From sequence record NC_048016.1: 64,000 nt of DNA, one strand, 5' to 3'. The notes below the pieces were generated by a model, which searched no databases, had not been told where the DNA came from, and worked only from the letters and a program-made list of their open reading frames with translations. This document shows, piece after piece, positions 57,730 through 63,681 of the stretch. How positions within the stretch are numbered: position 1 is the first letter of the stretch; each line of letters starts with the position of its first letter. Made by a program: the position numbers and the translations under genes.

Positions 57730-59056
57730 AGACCGCAATCGCACGCACTAAGAAATACAAGAGAAGGGCAGTACGCACCGCAGAGAGAGCAGCCGCATCT
57801 CGCAGGTGGGTCTCTTTCTTGGCAAGGGCTTCGATACGCTTACGCAGGGACAGCACGTATTCGTTCGAGGCCTTGGCTGCCTGATAGAGGGCCCGCATCC
57901 GGTTGAGCAGTGCGGCCACGTCGCGAAAGTTAATGCGGTTGGCCACAATCAAATCAAACGAGTGACTGAGCGTGTCCTCCATAATCGCCTCAACCTCTTG
58001 ACGCTTCTTCCCTAGGGGTAAGTCGGCAATGTAGAGTAAAAGCGTTTTAAGGGCGTTAGGCGAAGCCTTAGGCACCATCTCGAGCACCACACGGGCCAAC
58101 TCTTCCTTGTACAGGTTGTTGATGCTGTACGACGCATCGAACAGGTTCTGTTTGGCCGTGTTAAACGCCGTGACCTTATCGCGAATAATCGACTCGCCAT
58201 CCAGCTCCACTCGCGCAGACTGGGTAATCACTCGGCTGTTCTCACGACGGACCCGGTCGAGGACACCGTAGTAGTCTTTGACCGTTTGTTTGGTACGGGT
58301 GTTGAGGTCGGTGATAAAGCGAATCAGCAATCCCGGCTGGTCGAACTTCTTGATGGTTTCCCAGTGTGGGGATTCCTTGGAGCAGAAGTCCTGTGCACGT
58401 TGTTCGATGTGCGCACCCCAGTTACCCAGACGACGGATGTCGAACTTCAGGGACAACTGAGAATAGGTCGCTTCGGCCGCGGGCATGTCCACGGGTTTCG
58501 GGAAGAAGTGGTAGTAGATACTCGAGTAGAACTTAAACTGCAGCAGCTTGACAATCTCGACCGCGGCTTTGTGGAAGTCCTTGTCACCGAACATCGGAAT
58601 CATGCGATGCACCATGTACGCCACCGTCAGGTTCATGGTATCGGATGCCACGTTCCACGTCGGGTCAACGGTTTTGGTGTTGGTGATAAGCTCGGTGAGT
58701 AAGTCTTCATCCACCACGAGCACTTGGTCGAACAGGGCATAACGGTCGGTGTCGAAAAAGCGGATGGTGTGCACGCCAAGCAGGTTAGACCCAAACCACT
58801 CGATATTTCCCTCACGAGAAAAAACACCCGAAACGTAATGCATGATTCGTGTGCAGAGTTGTTTGTTGAACGTGACCTTTTTGAACGCTTCATCAAACGC
58901 TTTGAGGAGGGCAGGATTCTTCAGCGATTCCGTGGCAATTTTCTGCTGGTCGTCGTAGTCGTCATCATCCCAGTGGCGTTGTCCATACGGGACGTGGCTA
59001 CGGTGCCCACCTTCGACATATCCGCCCCGATTAAAATCATATTGTAACTCTGGCAT
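57728..59056 (-). CDS. Conserved jumbo-phage (probably virion) protein
   Basis: 442-aa helical ORF; synteny with SPN3US-like genomes. Confidence 0.65.
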   Translation of the reverse strand: MPELQYDFNRGGYVEGGHRSHVPYGQRHWDDDDYDDQQKIATESLKNPALLKAFDEAFKKVTFNKQLCTRIMHYVSGVFSREGNIEWFGSNLLGVHTIRFFDTDRYALFDQVLVVDEDLLTELITNTKTVDPTWNVASDTMNLTVAYMVHRMIPMFGDKDFHKAAVEIVKLLQFKFYSSIYYHFFPKPVDMPAAEATYSQLSLKFDIRRLGNWGAHIEQRAQDFCSKESPHWETIKKFDQPGLLIRFITDLNTRTKQTVKDYYGVLDRVRRENSRVITQSARVELDGESIIRDKVTAFNTAKQNLFDASYSINNLYKEELARVVLEMVPKASPNALKTLLLYIADLPLGKKRQEVEAIMEDTLSHSFDLIVANRINFRDVAALLNRMRALYQAAKASNEYVLSLRKRIEALAKKETHLRDAAALSAVRTALLLYFLVRAIAV

Positions 59057-59079
59057 AGGGGAACCTCTAACTTTTTACG

Positions 59080-59099
59080 GATAGATATTATAAATGTGA
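59080..59099 (+). promoter_or_regulatory. Class 1 (early-type) phage promoter
   Basis: GATAGATATTAT-aaat-GTGA. Confidence 0.7.
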
Positions 59100-59142
59100 T
59101 AGTATACACCTATAAATCTTTTTAAATCATAAGGAGTTATCA

Positions 59143-60279
59143 ATGTCTGGTGAACTACTGCGCAAGGTCGACTGGTTCGACCAGATGCGAAAACAAGAAA
59201 TAAAACCCGAAGAGCAAGTTAAGCTCTGGATTCAACCTCATGGGTGCCTGTGCGAAATTCGTGAAGTCGCAGGCCTGCCGGTCTTAGTGAACGGCGAGCA
59301 CCACGTACTGAACTCAACCTTTGCACGCACGTTGTTTGATGCGGGCATTGTCGGTCATGTGATCATTCACACAACCGAGAGTATTCCACAAAACACCGCG
59401 AAGTGGTTAACGTGGTGGTTGAGTGGAGATCCAGCAATGGACGATGAGAAGGTCCGTACCATTACGGTTTACACCTTTAGCCGTCGACCGAAAATGGCAT
59501 TGCCGTTTAAAGTCGAAGTGGTGGAACCGATTCTGCTACAAGCCAGTAACGTCAAATCCACCGTTGGGATGCAATCCCGTAACCTTCAGGTTTCGCTCTT
59601 CGTCGTAGAGCGAGCCAACGGGAAGCGGTACAGTCTCGAGCCGCAGCGTTATGTCACCTGCACAATCCTTGCCTGCACACAGCATGGCTATGTCTTGTGC
59701 TCGGACAATAACAACGTGTTCTTGGCTGATAAAATTTCCCGACATGTCCAGGCGCAATTGCAGAACGCAAAGTTACGTACGGATGATTTAGTCGGGACGC
59801 GTGTGAAAGTCCAGTTCACGATGTACACTGATGGTCAACGGCTTTGCAACTACAAGAACCCGATTGTGCATCGAAGTAGTGCCCTCGACGACATGGGTGC
59901 TCTCAGCAACCCGGCATACGATGGCCCGTATCTCTTTAAGCCATCCACACAACCCCGCAGCGCAATGCTCACGTCGACGCGCTGTACCCGTGCACGGATT
60001 ACCCTCGAGAACGAGGTAATTTGTGGCCGTGATGCCGAATCTGGCGCTATCCTATTCACATTCCGCAAGGGAGTAGAACCCGGTGTATATGGGGCGGAAA
60101 TGGGAATCGGTGGTCAGGTCGAACACTGGCGATTTGAATCTCCCTACTCTGTTGACGCATTAGACCCGAATGGTTTTGTGCGTGTGCTCGAACCGTTGAT
60201 TTACTTTGCAACGGGGTACAGCCTTCAGCGTATTGGACTGCACTTCGCCGACCACACAAAGCAGTCTCTCATTGCATAG
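59143..60279 (+). CDS. Hypothetical protein; possible degenerate ATP-dependent ligase fold
   Basis: 378 aa, AAGGAG RBS; segment resembling the ligase OB domain (LVGTRVKVQFTMYTDGQ...KNPIV). Confidence 0.6.
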   Translation: MSGELLRKVDWFDQMRKQEIKPEEQVKLWIQPHGCLCEIREVAGLPVLVNGEHHVLNSTFARTLFDAGIVGHVIIHTTESIPQNTAKWLTWWLSGDPAMDDEKVRTITVYTFSRRPKMALPFKVEVVEPILLQASNVKSTVGMQSRNLQVSLFVVERANGKRYSLEPQRYVTCTILACTQHGYVLCSDNNNVFLADKISRHVQAQLQNAKLRTDDLVGTRVKVQFTMYTDGQRLCNYKNPIVHRSSALDDMGALSNPAYDGPYLFKPSTQPRSAMLTSTRCTRARITLENEVICGRDAESGAILFTFRKGVEPGVYGAEMGIGGQVEHWRFESPYSVDALDPNGFVRVLEPLIYFATGYSLQRIGLHFADHTKQSLIA

Positions 60280-60290
60280 AGGATTTTAAC

Positions 60291-60794
60291 ATGCTAACCG
60301 CAACACCAACGATGAGGCCCGCAGTAAACATCGTCTGCCAAGACCGCAGACTGGTGGAACTTTGCGACCAGTACATCATCACTGCCATTCTCAACCACCA
60401 CCCGCATGTCTATTTCGACGGTCCTCAGCTGCTGGCTGCAGCAGCGGTACTCCGTCGACTCGAGGGTCGTCTGACCATCGTGGAGTTCTGCGACTTCATG
60501 GACAACCAGCCGGACATCATGGCTGGATTAGTTGCGCTGACGCAAGACGGCGTGGGTTCGTTTGACAACGGTATCGGAAACTTCCTGGACTTCAGTTCCG
60601 GCTTTGAGGGTGGCATGATGTTCATCACCAAAGAGCGTTTCGATGCTGTCTGGCAGTTCCTGATGATGCGTGGCGTGAACGTTCCCTACCAGCTGAGTAT
60701 GTTCAGCCATTGGGACATGAACATCATGGGCGAAGCAGGGATTTGGGTCAAACCGATTCAGCTGGCACTGGATGGCAACACCATCCACGCCTAA
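60291..60794 (+). CDS. Hypothetical protein
   Basis: 167 aa, AGAGGA RBS. Confidence 0.75.
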   Translation: MLTATPTMRPAVNIVCQDRRLVELCDQYIITAILNHHPHVYFDGPQLLAAAAVLRRLEGRLTIVEFCDFMDNQPDIMAGLVALTQDGVGSFDNGIGNFLDFSSGFEGGMMFITKERFDAVWQFLMMRGVNVPYQLSMFSHWDMNIMGEAGIWVKPIQLALDGNTIHA

Positions 60795-60806
60795 GATCGT
60801 ATCAGG

Positions 60807-60877
60807 GGTCGGTGTGTCTTTACGAGCACCGACCATCCTTTTCCACCCATAGGGTGGAACTCATTTCTTTTTTTTTT
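60807..60877 (+). terminator. Tandem hairpins with intrinsic terminator
   Basis: GGTCGGTG/CACCGACC then TTCCACCC-ATA-GGGTGGAA and long T tract. Confidence 0.75.
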
Positions 60878-61178
60878 GCCTCGGCCCCTAGTGGGACTAA
60901 GAATTGGTCACTTTTTAACCAACCGTTTGACCCTTTCAAAAAGCTTGCTGAAAAGCATTCTAAGCGTTTACAATCAAACCCGGTACATTCGGGTGGCTTA
61001 AGGGGAGAACGTTTACCACAGGGGCGTACAGTGCGTTTTAACAGGGGTTGGGGACGAAGTTTGCCGGGGGGATTTGGGAATCGCGAAATCGCCGGGGTGC
61101 GAAATCCCGTTTGGCCGACGCCGCCGCGCCGATCAAAAATACACTAGCGCTTGCGCGATTTAGGGGGATTTAAAATGG

Positions 61179-61506
61179 CTTAGCCTTGAGAGACGAAATC
61201 TCTTGAGTCTCTCTGCTAAGTGTTTGTTTTCCTTGGAAATTCTATTTATCTAATTCTAAAAAATACTTATAAATCAATTACTTATTACCTCTTTAAAAAA
61301 TACTTTTAAAAACAACAAGTTACGATCCTAAGTGATCCCTTCTATATACGCGTGCGCGTACGCACGCCATTTCCTACAGGGATCTTTTTGTTTTATATAA
61401 TAAATATTATTTAATTATATTTATATAATTATAATAATAGATCATTATACCGCGCCCCCGCGCGTGCGTGATCTTTATTAAGAGATTTTATTTGGCAAGG
61501 GGTGAT
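61179..61506. other. Putative replication origin / genome-end control region
   Basis: 49-bp A/T-only core (61391-61439), six GATC sites, flanking GC-rich inverted boxes, TAAAAAATACTT twice, imperfect palindrome 61179-61220. Confidence 0.45.
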
Positions 61507-61509
61507 CGC

Positions 61510-62260
61510 GGGGTGAAAACCCCCTGTCGAGTTTTTTACAGGGTTGCGTAGTATTCTATGCAATTGCGATGTTCTGCCAAAACATCCAGAGAGACTTCCG
61601 CACCCAACCGACTGGTCATCGTGGGGTGCTTGCCGTAGGACTTGACCCCAGCCTCTGTCCGAGTTTGGCGGTGGGTGTCACAGCCCACCGAACTTTTCAA
61701 AACGCCTGAGTTATTACCTATGGCAAAACGCATTCGGTTTCACGAGCAATCGGGGAACGTAACCAGACTAGCCAGCCAGCTAGTAATCTTCGACCGGGCA
61801 TCGACCCAGCGAAGGCCCACACTCGGATTCCGGTTCGAGTGGCAGTACCAGTTGCTTGCCCCCTTACGCGGGGGCTCTTTTTCGAATGCCTTCTGACGAG
61901 GACATTGGAAAACGGTGCAACACGACTTCGCCTACGGGCAGAGTTCAGGTTCCTGTCTTACCCACCGTCGCCGTTAAGCTGAGCGGCACGCGGTGGCGGT
62001 TTAGGGTTGCGGTCAATCCGCATTCTGAAATCTTGACGGGTACCGTGGCAGTCTTGGGAGTGAGCGAGGTCGGCGCGCAGATTACGACTGCGTTCGGCAC
62101 CTGCCAGCTGGTTGCACAGCTGCGATGGGTGGCTGGCCTGCTCCCCCAAGATGTGGCCAAGAGCATGGTGTGTCTTCTGAGGGGGAGGGCACCAGTCTGA
62201 AGATGGTCTAGGTTGATCCCCGAAAAGACGTAGCCTACGTCCTGACCAATCTTTTTTTTC
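61510..62260 (+). ncRNA. Large structured non-coding RNA region (possibly two RNAs; 3' part partly group-I-like)
   Basis: No credible ORF; continuous stems with G-U pairs, GAAA and cUACGg tetraloops, and long-range pairings. Confidence 0.5.
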
Positions 62261-62285
62261 TTTAGGCAAAACGTAGTGAGGCGCT

Positions 62286-62795
62286 ATGTTTACCAAAGAG
62301 TATCTGGATTCTCTACCAAAGAGAATTCCCATTGAAGAGCGGTTAGCTTCGAAAACCAAGGTTACAGAATCTGGTTGTCATGAGTATGACGGCGTGAAGG
62401 ACCGATGTGGGTACGGCCGATTTAAAATTGGCAAGCACTCACTCGGTGCGCACAAGGTCAGTTATTTGACCCGCGTTGGTGATTACGACCAGAATCTCGA
62501 GTTGATGCACAGTTGCGATAATCCCGCCTGTATCAACGTCGACCATCTCACACCTGCTACTCACCAAGAGAACATGCAGGATTGTGTCGATAAGGGACGC
62601 CACACCTCCCAGCATCTTGACTCGCCGAGACAAGCAGCAATCGAATCAGGGATGGAGTTGTATTACGGCAGTGTCTGTGAGATTCACGGCTATGACCTTC
62701 GCTCCGTTAAGAATGGGGCCTGTGTCTTTTGTCGCGATGATTACAATGCCAAGAAACGAGAGCAGCGTAGAGTGGCTCGTGAGAGTGCCGCCTAG
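62286..62795 (+). CDS. HNH homing endonuclease with C-terminal Cys/His zinc-binding motif
   Basis: GYGRF...AHKVSY...LMHSCDNPACINVDHL...HQENMQD; CEIH...CVFC; GAGG RBS. Confidence 0.9.
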   Translation: MFTKEYLDSLPKRIPIEERLASKTKVTESGCHEYDGVKDRCGYGRFKIGKHSLGAHKVSYLTRVGDYDQNLELMHSCDNPACINVDHLTPATHQENMQDCVDKGRHTSQHLDSPRQAAIESGMELYYGSVCEIHGYDLRSVKNGACVFCRDDYNAKKREQRRVARESAA

Positions 62796-62890
62796 GGGCG
62801 GTAGGCTTGAAAAGGGGTGATCCTTTTATCTTGGCGGCTCGGAAAGACGAGAGGGGTGGGTGTCCACGCTGAGAAGCGTCGGCACCTAGC
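62796..62890 (+). ncRNA. Structured element 3' of the HNH ORF
   Basis: Three hairpins, including GGUGUC-C-ACGCU-GAGA-AGCGU-C-GGCACC (GNRA loop). Confidence 0.4.
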
Positions 62891-62896
62891 TGATAT

Positions 62897-62921
62897 TTTT
62901 ACGGGTTAGTTCCTCCCTGTG
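62897..62921 (+). promoter_or_regulatory. Class 2 phage promoter variant (TTTTAC-N15-TGTG)
   Basis: Same spacing as the exact copies. Confidence 0.45.
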
Positions 62922-62943
62922 TATAAAACTCAAGGAGCTAATC

Positions 62944-63681
62944 ATGATTGACCGAAGCAAACTCAACACGAACTTGTCACTGAGTCGCGTTATCGACATC
63001 CTCGGCACACCCGTGTGGCTGATGAGCAAAGATTCATCAGTTCTCAAACAGCTCGATGAAGCGGTGTCCAAAGTCTATCTGGGTCATCACCATAGCCCAT
63101 CGCTGGCTGAACCTTCTCGCTGGCTGACCATTGCGGCGGGTGGTGCCGGAAAAGACGTGTGTATCGCCCAAGGTAAGGGCGACAAACGCAGCGATGTCGA
63201 AATCTACAATGCGCTGTTTGCTAGCGCGTTGACTACCGTGATGCTTCGCATAGCGCGCGACAGTCCGATACATGAACCGCGTGCAGCACGTCCGTTGTGG
63301 GACTTTGTGCCAAAGCGTAATCCAGCTGAATGCGATATTGTGGTTGATGGTGAAGTTATGCCCATCGCCCCCTTCGTCGAATGGATTTGTTCGGTCGACG
63401 ACGAATACCACAACCAGTACGCAGCTCTCCTCGAGCGGGATTTTGAATCACTGCAGTTCATGCGCTTCCCGAACAACGCGGCGGTTGCAGTTGTCGGTAA
63501 ACTCAATCCCAAAGCCGGCGGGTACTGTGTTCCAGTTTGCGTGACGTATTACGAAGGCGTCAACGGTACACTCAAGGCGATTTACGAAGTCATCCGCGTT
63601 TACCACAAATCCACGACACGGACGAACACCTTCGACTACCTCACGTCGATTAACCCGAGCGTGGATGAGTCTGCCCGCTAA
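62944..63681 (+). CDS. Hypothetical protein
   Basis: 245 aa, AAGGAG RBS. Confidence 0.8.
   Translation: MIDRSKLNTNLSLSRVIDILGTPVWLMSKDSSVLKQLDEAVSKVYLGHHHSPSLAEPSRWLTIAAGGAGKDVCIAQGKGDKRSDVEIYNALFASALTTVMLRIARDSPIHEPRAARPLWDFVPKRNPAECDIVVDGEVMPIAPFVEWICSVDDEYHNQYAALLERDFESLQFMRFPNNAAVAVVGKLNPKAGGYCVPVCVTYYEGVNGTLKAIYEVIRVYHKSTTRTNTFDYLTSINPSVDESAR

Follow-up and report, generated by a model that had tools for sequence, protein, structure and literature searches.

Why should the gene for an HNH endonuclease sit inside a folded RNA that interrupts no protein gene? The question is posed by the last 64 kb of the genome of the Erwinia amylovora jumbo phage Wellington (MH426724), hereafter the window, in which a position equals the record position minus 180950. 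Between gp289 (ends at 60794, + strand) and gp294 (starts at 62944, + strand) lies a 2.15-kb stretch without credible genes, which holds both an open reading frame (ORF) for the nuclease and a structured RNA that we call R2. The original prediction, made from this sequence alone, read 61885-62890 as a divergent group I or group I-like intron or ribozyme that carries the HNH ORF in a peripheral loop and moves with it as one unit. Based on comparisons with relatives, we propose instead that a free-standing HNH homing-endonuclease cassette of about 615-634 nt has settled in a variable peripheral hairpin of a conserved structured non-coding RNA (ncRNA) gene, R2. We regard this reading as very probable.

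The nuclease gene and its insert

62195-62828, + strand: the insert, 634 nt where the IMG/VR contig L015 has 21 nt
62201-62266, + strand: terminator-like, int-alpA-like hairpin with a predicted fold (outer stem 62202-08/62244-51, then U8 at 62252-59)
62286-62795, + strand: HNH homing-endonuclease ORF of 169 amino acids (aa), recognized from Pfam, PHROG and its motif
62190-62193, + strand: CACC, the 5' arm of the variable hairpin Hh, which pairs with GGUG at 62816-19 and can be extended to 62185-93/62816-25

By its matches the ORF is an HNH endonuclease, as originally claimed: PHROG 1492 is hit at 1e-29, the Pfam families HNH_3 (just under its cut-off) and zf-His_Me_endon are matched, and the H..N..H/N catalytic motif MHSCDNPACINVDHL..HQEN is intact. 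The insert is laid out as a small expression unit, in which the hairpin with U8 is followed by GAGG, the 169-aa ORF and a tail of 20-33 nt; the GAGG resembles a Shine-Dalgarno (SD) sequence and stands 5 nt (GCGCU) ahead of the ATG. The protein encoded by phage Kwan is 100% identical to that of Wellington. Otherwise the closest homologues share at most 46% aa identity and belong to unrelated phages without R2, the nearest being a lone free-standing gene between baseplate genes of Klebsiella phage BUCT_49532. A sequence search of the PDB with the protein gave no match, and neither did a search of E. coli genomes for a source of the 5' hairpin of the insert.

Presence and absence of the insert in close relatives

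The sister phage pEa_SNUABM_11, of the same genus, aligns with Wellington throughout the intergenic region at 74% identity, with a clean gap at the HNH region. Over 58001-62194 identity between contig L015 and Wellington is 98.9%, with no difference at all in 61876-62194; after that, 21 nt replace Wellington 62195-62828, and the alignment resumes at 62829. A second empty allele (L008, L012 and L122) aligns through 62211 and resumes at 62827, so that relative to this type the insert is 62212-62826, or about 615 nt. The alleles with the gene are those of Wellington, Kwan and the metagenomic contig L007, and the non-coding flanks of the insert are identical among them. The cassette is therefore present in some and absent from others of a set of near-identical backgrounds. 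Presence or absence at one locus among close relatives, as expected of a free-standing HNH gene, is what was found.

Because near-identical relatives keep 61876-62194 and 62829-62893 and lack 62195-62828, the upstream stems of the supposed intron are not part of a mobile unit. Empty alleles, which the original prediction had suggested looking for, do exist, but they lack 62195-62828 only; no relative examined lacks the RNA. Nor does the idea of an RNA and a nuclease gene travelling as a single element survive the wider survey, in which about 50 phage records and several metagenomic contigs have the RNA but not the gene, and homologues of the gene occur without this flanking sequence. The latter is an outcome that the original prediction itself had named as refuting it, and the converse is seen too. 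Since R2 is present without HNH and the nearest HNH homologues lie in unrelated phages, the comparison shows R2 and the HNH gene to be separate entities.

Might the cassette instead be ancestral at this site and have been lost from the relatives? Presence and absence alone give no direction. However, only three very close alleles carry the cassette, and all four genera to which the relatives belong have members without it, including the closest sisters. The empty alleles show an ordinary short hairpin and are of two different kinds; several independent precise losses would be needed. We consider such an origin improbable, and return to a recent mobile insertion.

What did the cassette enter? 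Relatives have a G run on one side of the site and the invariant AUCUUGGCGG on the other, and in most of them a short CUCC-loop-GGAG hairpin with loops of 4-11 nt occupies it. On this comparison the insertion site is a variable, peripheral part of R2. An imperfect direct repeat, GGTTGATCC (62211-19) and GGGTGATCC (62815-23), brackets the cassette; the last base of the insert relative to L015 is A (62828), as is the base just before the insert (62194), whereas group I introns are marked by a U.G pair at the 5' splice site and a terminal G. In Wellington 62185-93 can pair with 62816-25, looping the ORF out. Three elements of the earlier description stand here: the HNH gene does lie within a structured non-coding RNA, no protein gene is interrupted, and the segment can be looped out by bases that flank it. 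The pairing originally put forward for this loop, AGCCUAC (62232-38) with GUAGGCU (62801-07), is indeed complementary, but the predicted fold does not contain it, and its duplex energy only marginally beats that of shuffled sequences (16/300).

Signs of homing and a proposed mechanism

Identity between Wellington and L015 is 98.9% upstream of the site and 89.3% downstream of it. L007 is L008-like upstream (95.7%); its downstream side is Wellington/Kwan-like and has 76% identity to L008. This pattern is suggestive of a downstream flank that is carried along with the cassette, which would fit repair initiated by a cut on the downstream side. We therefore picture the following cycle. The nuclease would cut HNH-less alleles near the invariant GGUGAUCC/AUCUUGGCGGCUCGG, and the cassette would spread by recombinational repair, dragging the downstream flank with it. 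The insertion would be tolerated in that the flanks 62185-93/62816-25 still close a hairpin and loop the ORF out, while the U8 hairpin might limit read-through into the nuclease gene. R2 itself would be a stand-alone stable RNA acting in trans, of the class of large orphan phage-associated RNAs.

Several points weigh against this proposal. The match of the ORF to Pfam HNH_3 scores 24.6 bits, just under the cut-off of 24.8. The sample behind the co-conversion pattern is three alleles with HNH and three without. Hairpin Hh is missing in the divergent member L259 and different in L011, and it is uncertain whether the CACC/GGUG hairpin of the Wellington lineage is homologous to the CUCC/GGAG hairpin of the others. 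Finally, the predicted U8 hairpin in the insert may stop transcription before the 3' element of the RNA, in which case R2 would be broken or split in Wellington. If transcription does end at U8, R2 is left without that element; the polymerase may read through, the element may be transcribed separately and assembled in trans, the RNA may be processed, or the element may be dispensable.

R2 is a structured RNA

61876-62194, + strand: R2 body, supported by covariation and identical to the HNH-less L015
61879-93/61898-912, + strand: Ha, the 5' hairpin, with covariation
61948-57/62035-44, + strand: Hb, a long-range helix kept with different sequences in every lineage
62046-49/62156-59, + strand: Hc, with covariation
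62051-58/62145-52, + strand: Hd, which covaries in all 19 sequences of the alignment described below
62062-74/62132-43, + strand: He, 12-13 bp with many compensatory changes
62075-80/62088-93, + strand: hairpin with covariation
62098-110/62117-131, + strand: hairpin with covariation
62828-62894, + strand: R2 3' element, supported by covariation and made up of the invariant AUCUUGGCGG, Hi, the motif GAGAGGGG, Hj and GCUGA
62838-41/62848-51, + strand: Hi, a hairpin of the 3' element
62855-70/62875-90, + strand: Hj, a long hairpin of the 3' element with a GAGA loop

Homologous regions of R2 were gathered from annotated phages, IMG/VR and metagenomes. Every member starts at the invariant UUUUUCGA(R) (window 61878) and ends at GCUGA (62893); in Wellington R2 comprises 61876-62194 plus 62829-62893, and across members it measures 370-510 nt. 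RNAalifold on 13 sequences from four genera returned 56 pairs, 27 of them with compensatory changes. The 3' domain was aligned in 19 sequences with seven named helices, and controls were made by sliding the partners by 1-3 columns and by 500 shuffles. In the real alignment 93.8% of cells pair, against about 40% in the slid controls; both sides change in 24 of the 49 pairs, and none of the 500 shuffles reaches the observed values. In the Wellington lineage He and the hairpins 62075-80/62088-93 and 62098-110/62117-131 form a covarying three-way junction. All helices supported by covariation are nested. The uninterrupted R2 of L015 folds at z = -4.54, and the folding advantage originally expected for the Wellington region is there as well (z = -3.67 against shuffled sequences for 61885-62285). 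Searched with a covariance model of the 3' element, the window has a sole match at 62828-62894 (93.4 bits, E = 4e-21; next best 9.8 bits).

Could the conservation reflect a DNA element, such as a replication origin, a packaging site or an array of protein-binding sites, rather than an RNA? R2 does adjoin an AT-rich core with a GC tract on either side, and GTGATCY motifs are clustered on one strand in this region. However, the AT-rich element is a separate part upstream, and compensatory changes preserve the helices. The paired cells include 111 G.U and 6 A.C combinations, an asymmetry not expected from cruciforms or protein sites, and it assigns the structure to the + strand RNA rather than to DNA or to the other strand. 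A DNA element is thus a very improbable explanation, and the alignments show R2 to be a structured, strand-specific RNA whose helices are kept by compensatory changes.

The R2 body also holds invariant motifs, namely UUUUUCGA (61878-85), UUCAGGU (61944-50) and UACCGUGGCAG (62041-51). We infer from the long invariant single strands GCCUAACAC, UUCAGGU, UACCGUGGCAG, AUCUUGGCGGCUCGG and GAGAGGGG that R2 makes tertiary contacts or has a conserved partner; GCCUAACAC is limited to SPN3US-, Erskine- and Machina-type members.

R2 is found in every SPN3US-like phage examined, across Wellingtonvirus, Seoulvirus, Erskinevirus and Machinavirus. Its place is always between an AT-rich core, itself bounded by GC tracts, and the first downstream gene, and in SPN3US-type genomes it is close to tRNA genes. 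A 78-nt piece (62816-62893) is present in 51 phage records, always in unannotated DNA; 27 are Erwinia phages, 20 Salmonella, two Escherichia and one Proteus, and one is labelled Enterobacteria phage. In a set of one genome for each of 185,579 bacterial and archaeal species there was no copy, the pattern matches found there being due to chance. A host origin was rejected on this search, R2 being confined to one phage clade. The sole match among E. coli genomes is L259, a 222-kb 'plasmid' that is itself an SPN3US-like replicon. This sequence (NZ_CP173450.1, 221,873 bp, E. coli strain 98232) combines a divergent R2 with an AT-rich element of the SPN3US type, has a tRNA gene nearby, and is probably a jumbo-phage genome or a phage-plasmid.

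R2 is not a group I intron

How does this structure compare with the group I core that had been drawn on the same bases? The bases quoted for each stem are where the original prediction placed them, and much of what made the reading attractive is real: local hairpins are present at the P2, P4 and P9 positions, the four pairs of P3 persist in four relatives, the region has a better fold than shuffled sequences, the HNH ORF has a loop-like position, and GNRA-type hairpins follow it (CUCG-GAAAGA-CGAG at 62838-51 and CGCU-GAGA-AGCG at 62867-78). The pairings that define a group I core fare differently. The 3' strand of P7 (62084-90/62193-98) needs 62195-98, which exist in the insert only, and its 5' strand corresponds to the loop plus 3' arm of the covarying hairpin 62075-80/62088-93. 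P3 (62002-05/62137-40) has its 3' strand inside He, which covaries better, while P8 (62141-47/62181-87) overlaps both He and Hd. Covariation among SPN3US-like relatives, which had been named as a check, supports the helices of R2 and contradicts P3, P7 and P8, and no P3/P7 pseudoknot is found. P2 and P4 do exist as local hairpins, but only in the Wellington lineage; they vary in sequence and fall in the variable stretch that Hb closes. P9 (62202-08/62244-51) belongs to the insert, as the outer stem of its terminator-like hairpin.

Searches of Rfam lead to the same point. A scan of the whole window at gathering thresholds was empty. At E <= 10 the 2.3-kb Wellington region yielded no family for R2 and only a sub-threshold int-alpA match in the insert, and the uninterrupted R2 of L015 yielded no family; at E <= 1 five other uninterrupted relatives gave tRNAs and chance matches only. 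The families singled out earlier (Intron_gpI, HEARO, ROOL and GOLLD) were thus unmatched at E <= 10, with or without the insert. In addition, the supposed core (61964-62194) is present in all relatives without HNH, exons are lacking, and R2 is not missing as a whole from any relative. On this evidence R2 is not group I-like, and a divergent group I unit that moves with its ORF is extremely improbable. HEARO/IscB omega-RNA was rejected as a candidate too: there is no HEARO match, the 169-aa protein has an HNH domain only, and R2 occurs without any HNH gene.

What kind of RNA is R2?

Is R2 a long cis-acting leader, that is, a 5' untranslated region that controls the downstream early gene or genes and happens to house the cassette? 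In every phage R2 lies on the same strand as the downstream gene and directly upstream of it, and in Huxley its last hairpin ends about 15 nt before the SD sequence of the next gene. Hairpin Hh pairs CUCC with GGAG(GUGAUCC), which is complementary to the 3' end of 16S rRNA, as in switches that sequester the SD sequence. On the other hand, SPN3US gp1 has no clear similarity to Wellington gp294 or Huxley gp279, while R2 is conserved; in several relatives R2 is separated from the gene by a T run, a conserved TTTAC motif and a small hairpin that resembles a terminator; and several members lack the SD-like motif or have it interrupted. A leader therefore seems unlikely to us, though less so than the readings set aside above. 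Since the downstream gene differs among lineages and a T run and TTTAC motif often separate it from R2, we favour a stand-alone stable RNA over a cis-acting leader.

The complementarity to 16S rRNA deserves a comment of its own. In member L006 the sequence GGAGGUGAUCCAA, just 3' of the variable hairpin (R2 383-395; window 62815-62823), is complementary to E. coli 16S rRNA 1527-1539 over 13 nt without a mismatch. One shuffle in 200 gave a match of this length; the complement is 9-10 nt long in other members and missing from L259. The complement may be an SD relic or a contact with the 30S subunit. Mimicry of, or pairing with, rRNA as the general role of R2 was rejected, the complement being interrupted or absent elsewhere and other 9-mers being at chance level. 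A small ORF after the SD-like motif was discarded as well, its frame being disrupted by indels of 1-2 nt between lineages.

Taking the stand-alone RNA one step further, R2 could be a new family of trans-acting structured RNA, of the GOLLD/ROOL class, a ribozyme or a ribonucleoprotein scaffold, needed early by SPN3US-like nucleus-forming phages and made beside an origin-like element; its invariant sequence would then be the homing site of the HNH nuclease, and Wellington would live on an interrupted or two-piece RNA. We offer this fuller picture tentatively. Neither Rfam 15 nor the literature searched was found to contain a description of R2, and no transcriptome for SPN3US-like phages was found in the same literature.

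The surrounding locus

60812-61147, + strand: gp290, annotated small ORF in conserved non-coding DNA
61347-61470, no strand: origin- or promoter-like element upstream of R1 and R2, read from sequence
61536-61733, - strand: gp291, annotated small ORF in conserved non-coding DNA
61537-61875, + strand: R1, a variable non-coding stretch with hairpins that ends in a strong terminator hairpin (61858-75) plus a T run
61958-62269, - strand: gp292, annotated small ORF whose start falls in insert-only DNA

In the sister phage pEa_SNUABM_11 gp290-292 are unannotated and their frames are disrupted by indels of 1, 9, 12 and 22 nt; these ORFs and their counterparts are probably not genes. A search of the window for tRNA and tmRNA found none. 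R1 is conserved within lineages and variable between them, and is very short in Machinavirus. Upstream of it, the GC tract at 61347-67 is a perfect alternation of purine and pyrimidine and prone to form Z-DNA; it is followed by an AT-rich core of about 65 bp (about 61386-61449), 100% identical to that of pEa_SNUABM_11, and by a second GC tract (61450-70). The same layout of GC tract, AT core and GC tract is seen in SPN3US, Huxley, Caitlin and L259, and the element may be a replication origin or a promoter block.

Which signals might drive transcription here? The motif ATAGATATTAT has four exact + strand copies in the window (3880, 44368, 45134 and 59081), one of them just upstream of gp288, and is over-represented when up to two mismatches are allowed (13 matches against 5.2 expected), making it a candidate phage promoter motif. 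In the search for a promoter at this locus it was set aside, the AT core holding only a near-match (61400-61410). A T/A run followed by TTTAC(R) occurs after the right GC tract (61528-61538) and just after R2 (62894-62902), and at the same places in relatives; as a promoter pattern, WWWWTTTACR is not enriched in the window (4 matches against 2.9 expected). A scan for sigma-70 promoters was uninformative. GTGATCY is scarcer than expected in the window (9 against 16.9), and three of the nine copies are on the + strand of this intergenic region (61332, 61468 and 62817), with a GTGATCG at 61500; the copy at 62817 adjoins the HNH insertion. At the start of gp294 (62942-63024) dense substitutions separate Wellington from Kwan and L007 in a region that is otherwise 98% identical, a patch that may be a recombination mosaic beside the homing site.

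Implications

What are the consequences of this arrangement? Although SPN3US-like phages serve as a model for the jumbo phages that form a nucleus, the 2-kb region that contains R2 is unannotated in them or filled with spurious ORF calls. As far as databases go R2 is new, since none describes this large folded RNA of SPN3US-like phages. That four genera have kept an RNA of 400-500 nt, rich in covarying helices and long invariant single strands, makes an important role likely, and such a role is directly testable. The HNH insertion is a natural experiment that marks a part of R2 tolerant of 600 nt of foreign sequence, and the locus supplies pairs of phages with and without the nuclease gene for studies of homing and competition.

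Comparison with known systems

The hairpin at the 5' end of the insert resembles int-alpA RNA (RF02996), whose model it matches from end to end, including the CUAG, CGAAAAG and CCUG linkers and the U run. The score is 31.0 bits (E = 6.8e-4 in the 2.3-kb search), below the gathering cut-off of 35.8; the inner hairpins are shortened, and no int or alpA gene is nearby.

R2 itself is best set beside the large orphan structured RNAs GOLLD and ROOL (also HEARO and OLE), which frequently occur in phages or prophages and close to tRNA genes. Like GOLLD and ROOL, R2 is several hundred nt long, has many covarying helices and long invariant single strands, is carried by phages and, in SPN3US-type genomes, lies near tRNA genes. 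Unlike these families, it has no Rfam match and is confined to one clade of Enterobacterales jumbo phages.

For an RNA that accommodates foreign DNA, bacterial 23S rRNA offers an analogy, though only an analogy. Some of its helices carry intervening sequences, some of these with an ORF, and the extra DNA is tolerated in the terminal loop since the helix still closes. By the same analogy excision of the RNase III type could leave a functional two-piece R2. The predicted closing stem in Wellington, however, is short (4-9 bp).

Group I introns with endonuclease ORFs in peripheral loops, such as T4 td with I-TevI or the SPO1 intron with I-HmuI, share with the Wellington locus a nuclease ORF looped out of a structured RNA, and the HNH type is that of I-HmuI-like enzymes. 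Unlike them, the locus has no group I core, exons or splice-site features, R2 exists widely without the ORF, and nothing suggests that R2 is removed from a longer transcript.

The closest parallel to the cassette is provided by the free-standing homing endonuclease genes of phages, among them the seg and mob genes of T4 and HNH genes of the HNH_3 type. As in those systems, the nuclease ORF is small, is equipped with expression signals of its own, occupies the locus in some close relatives but not in others, adjoins highly conserved sequence, and has flanks whose identity seems to follow its presence. The difference lies in the host locus, which is neither a protein gene nor a spacer between protein genes but the gene of a structured ncRNA.

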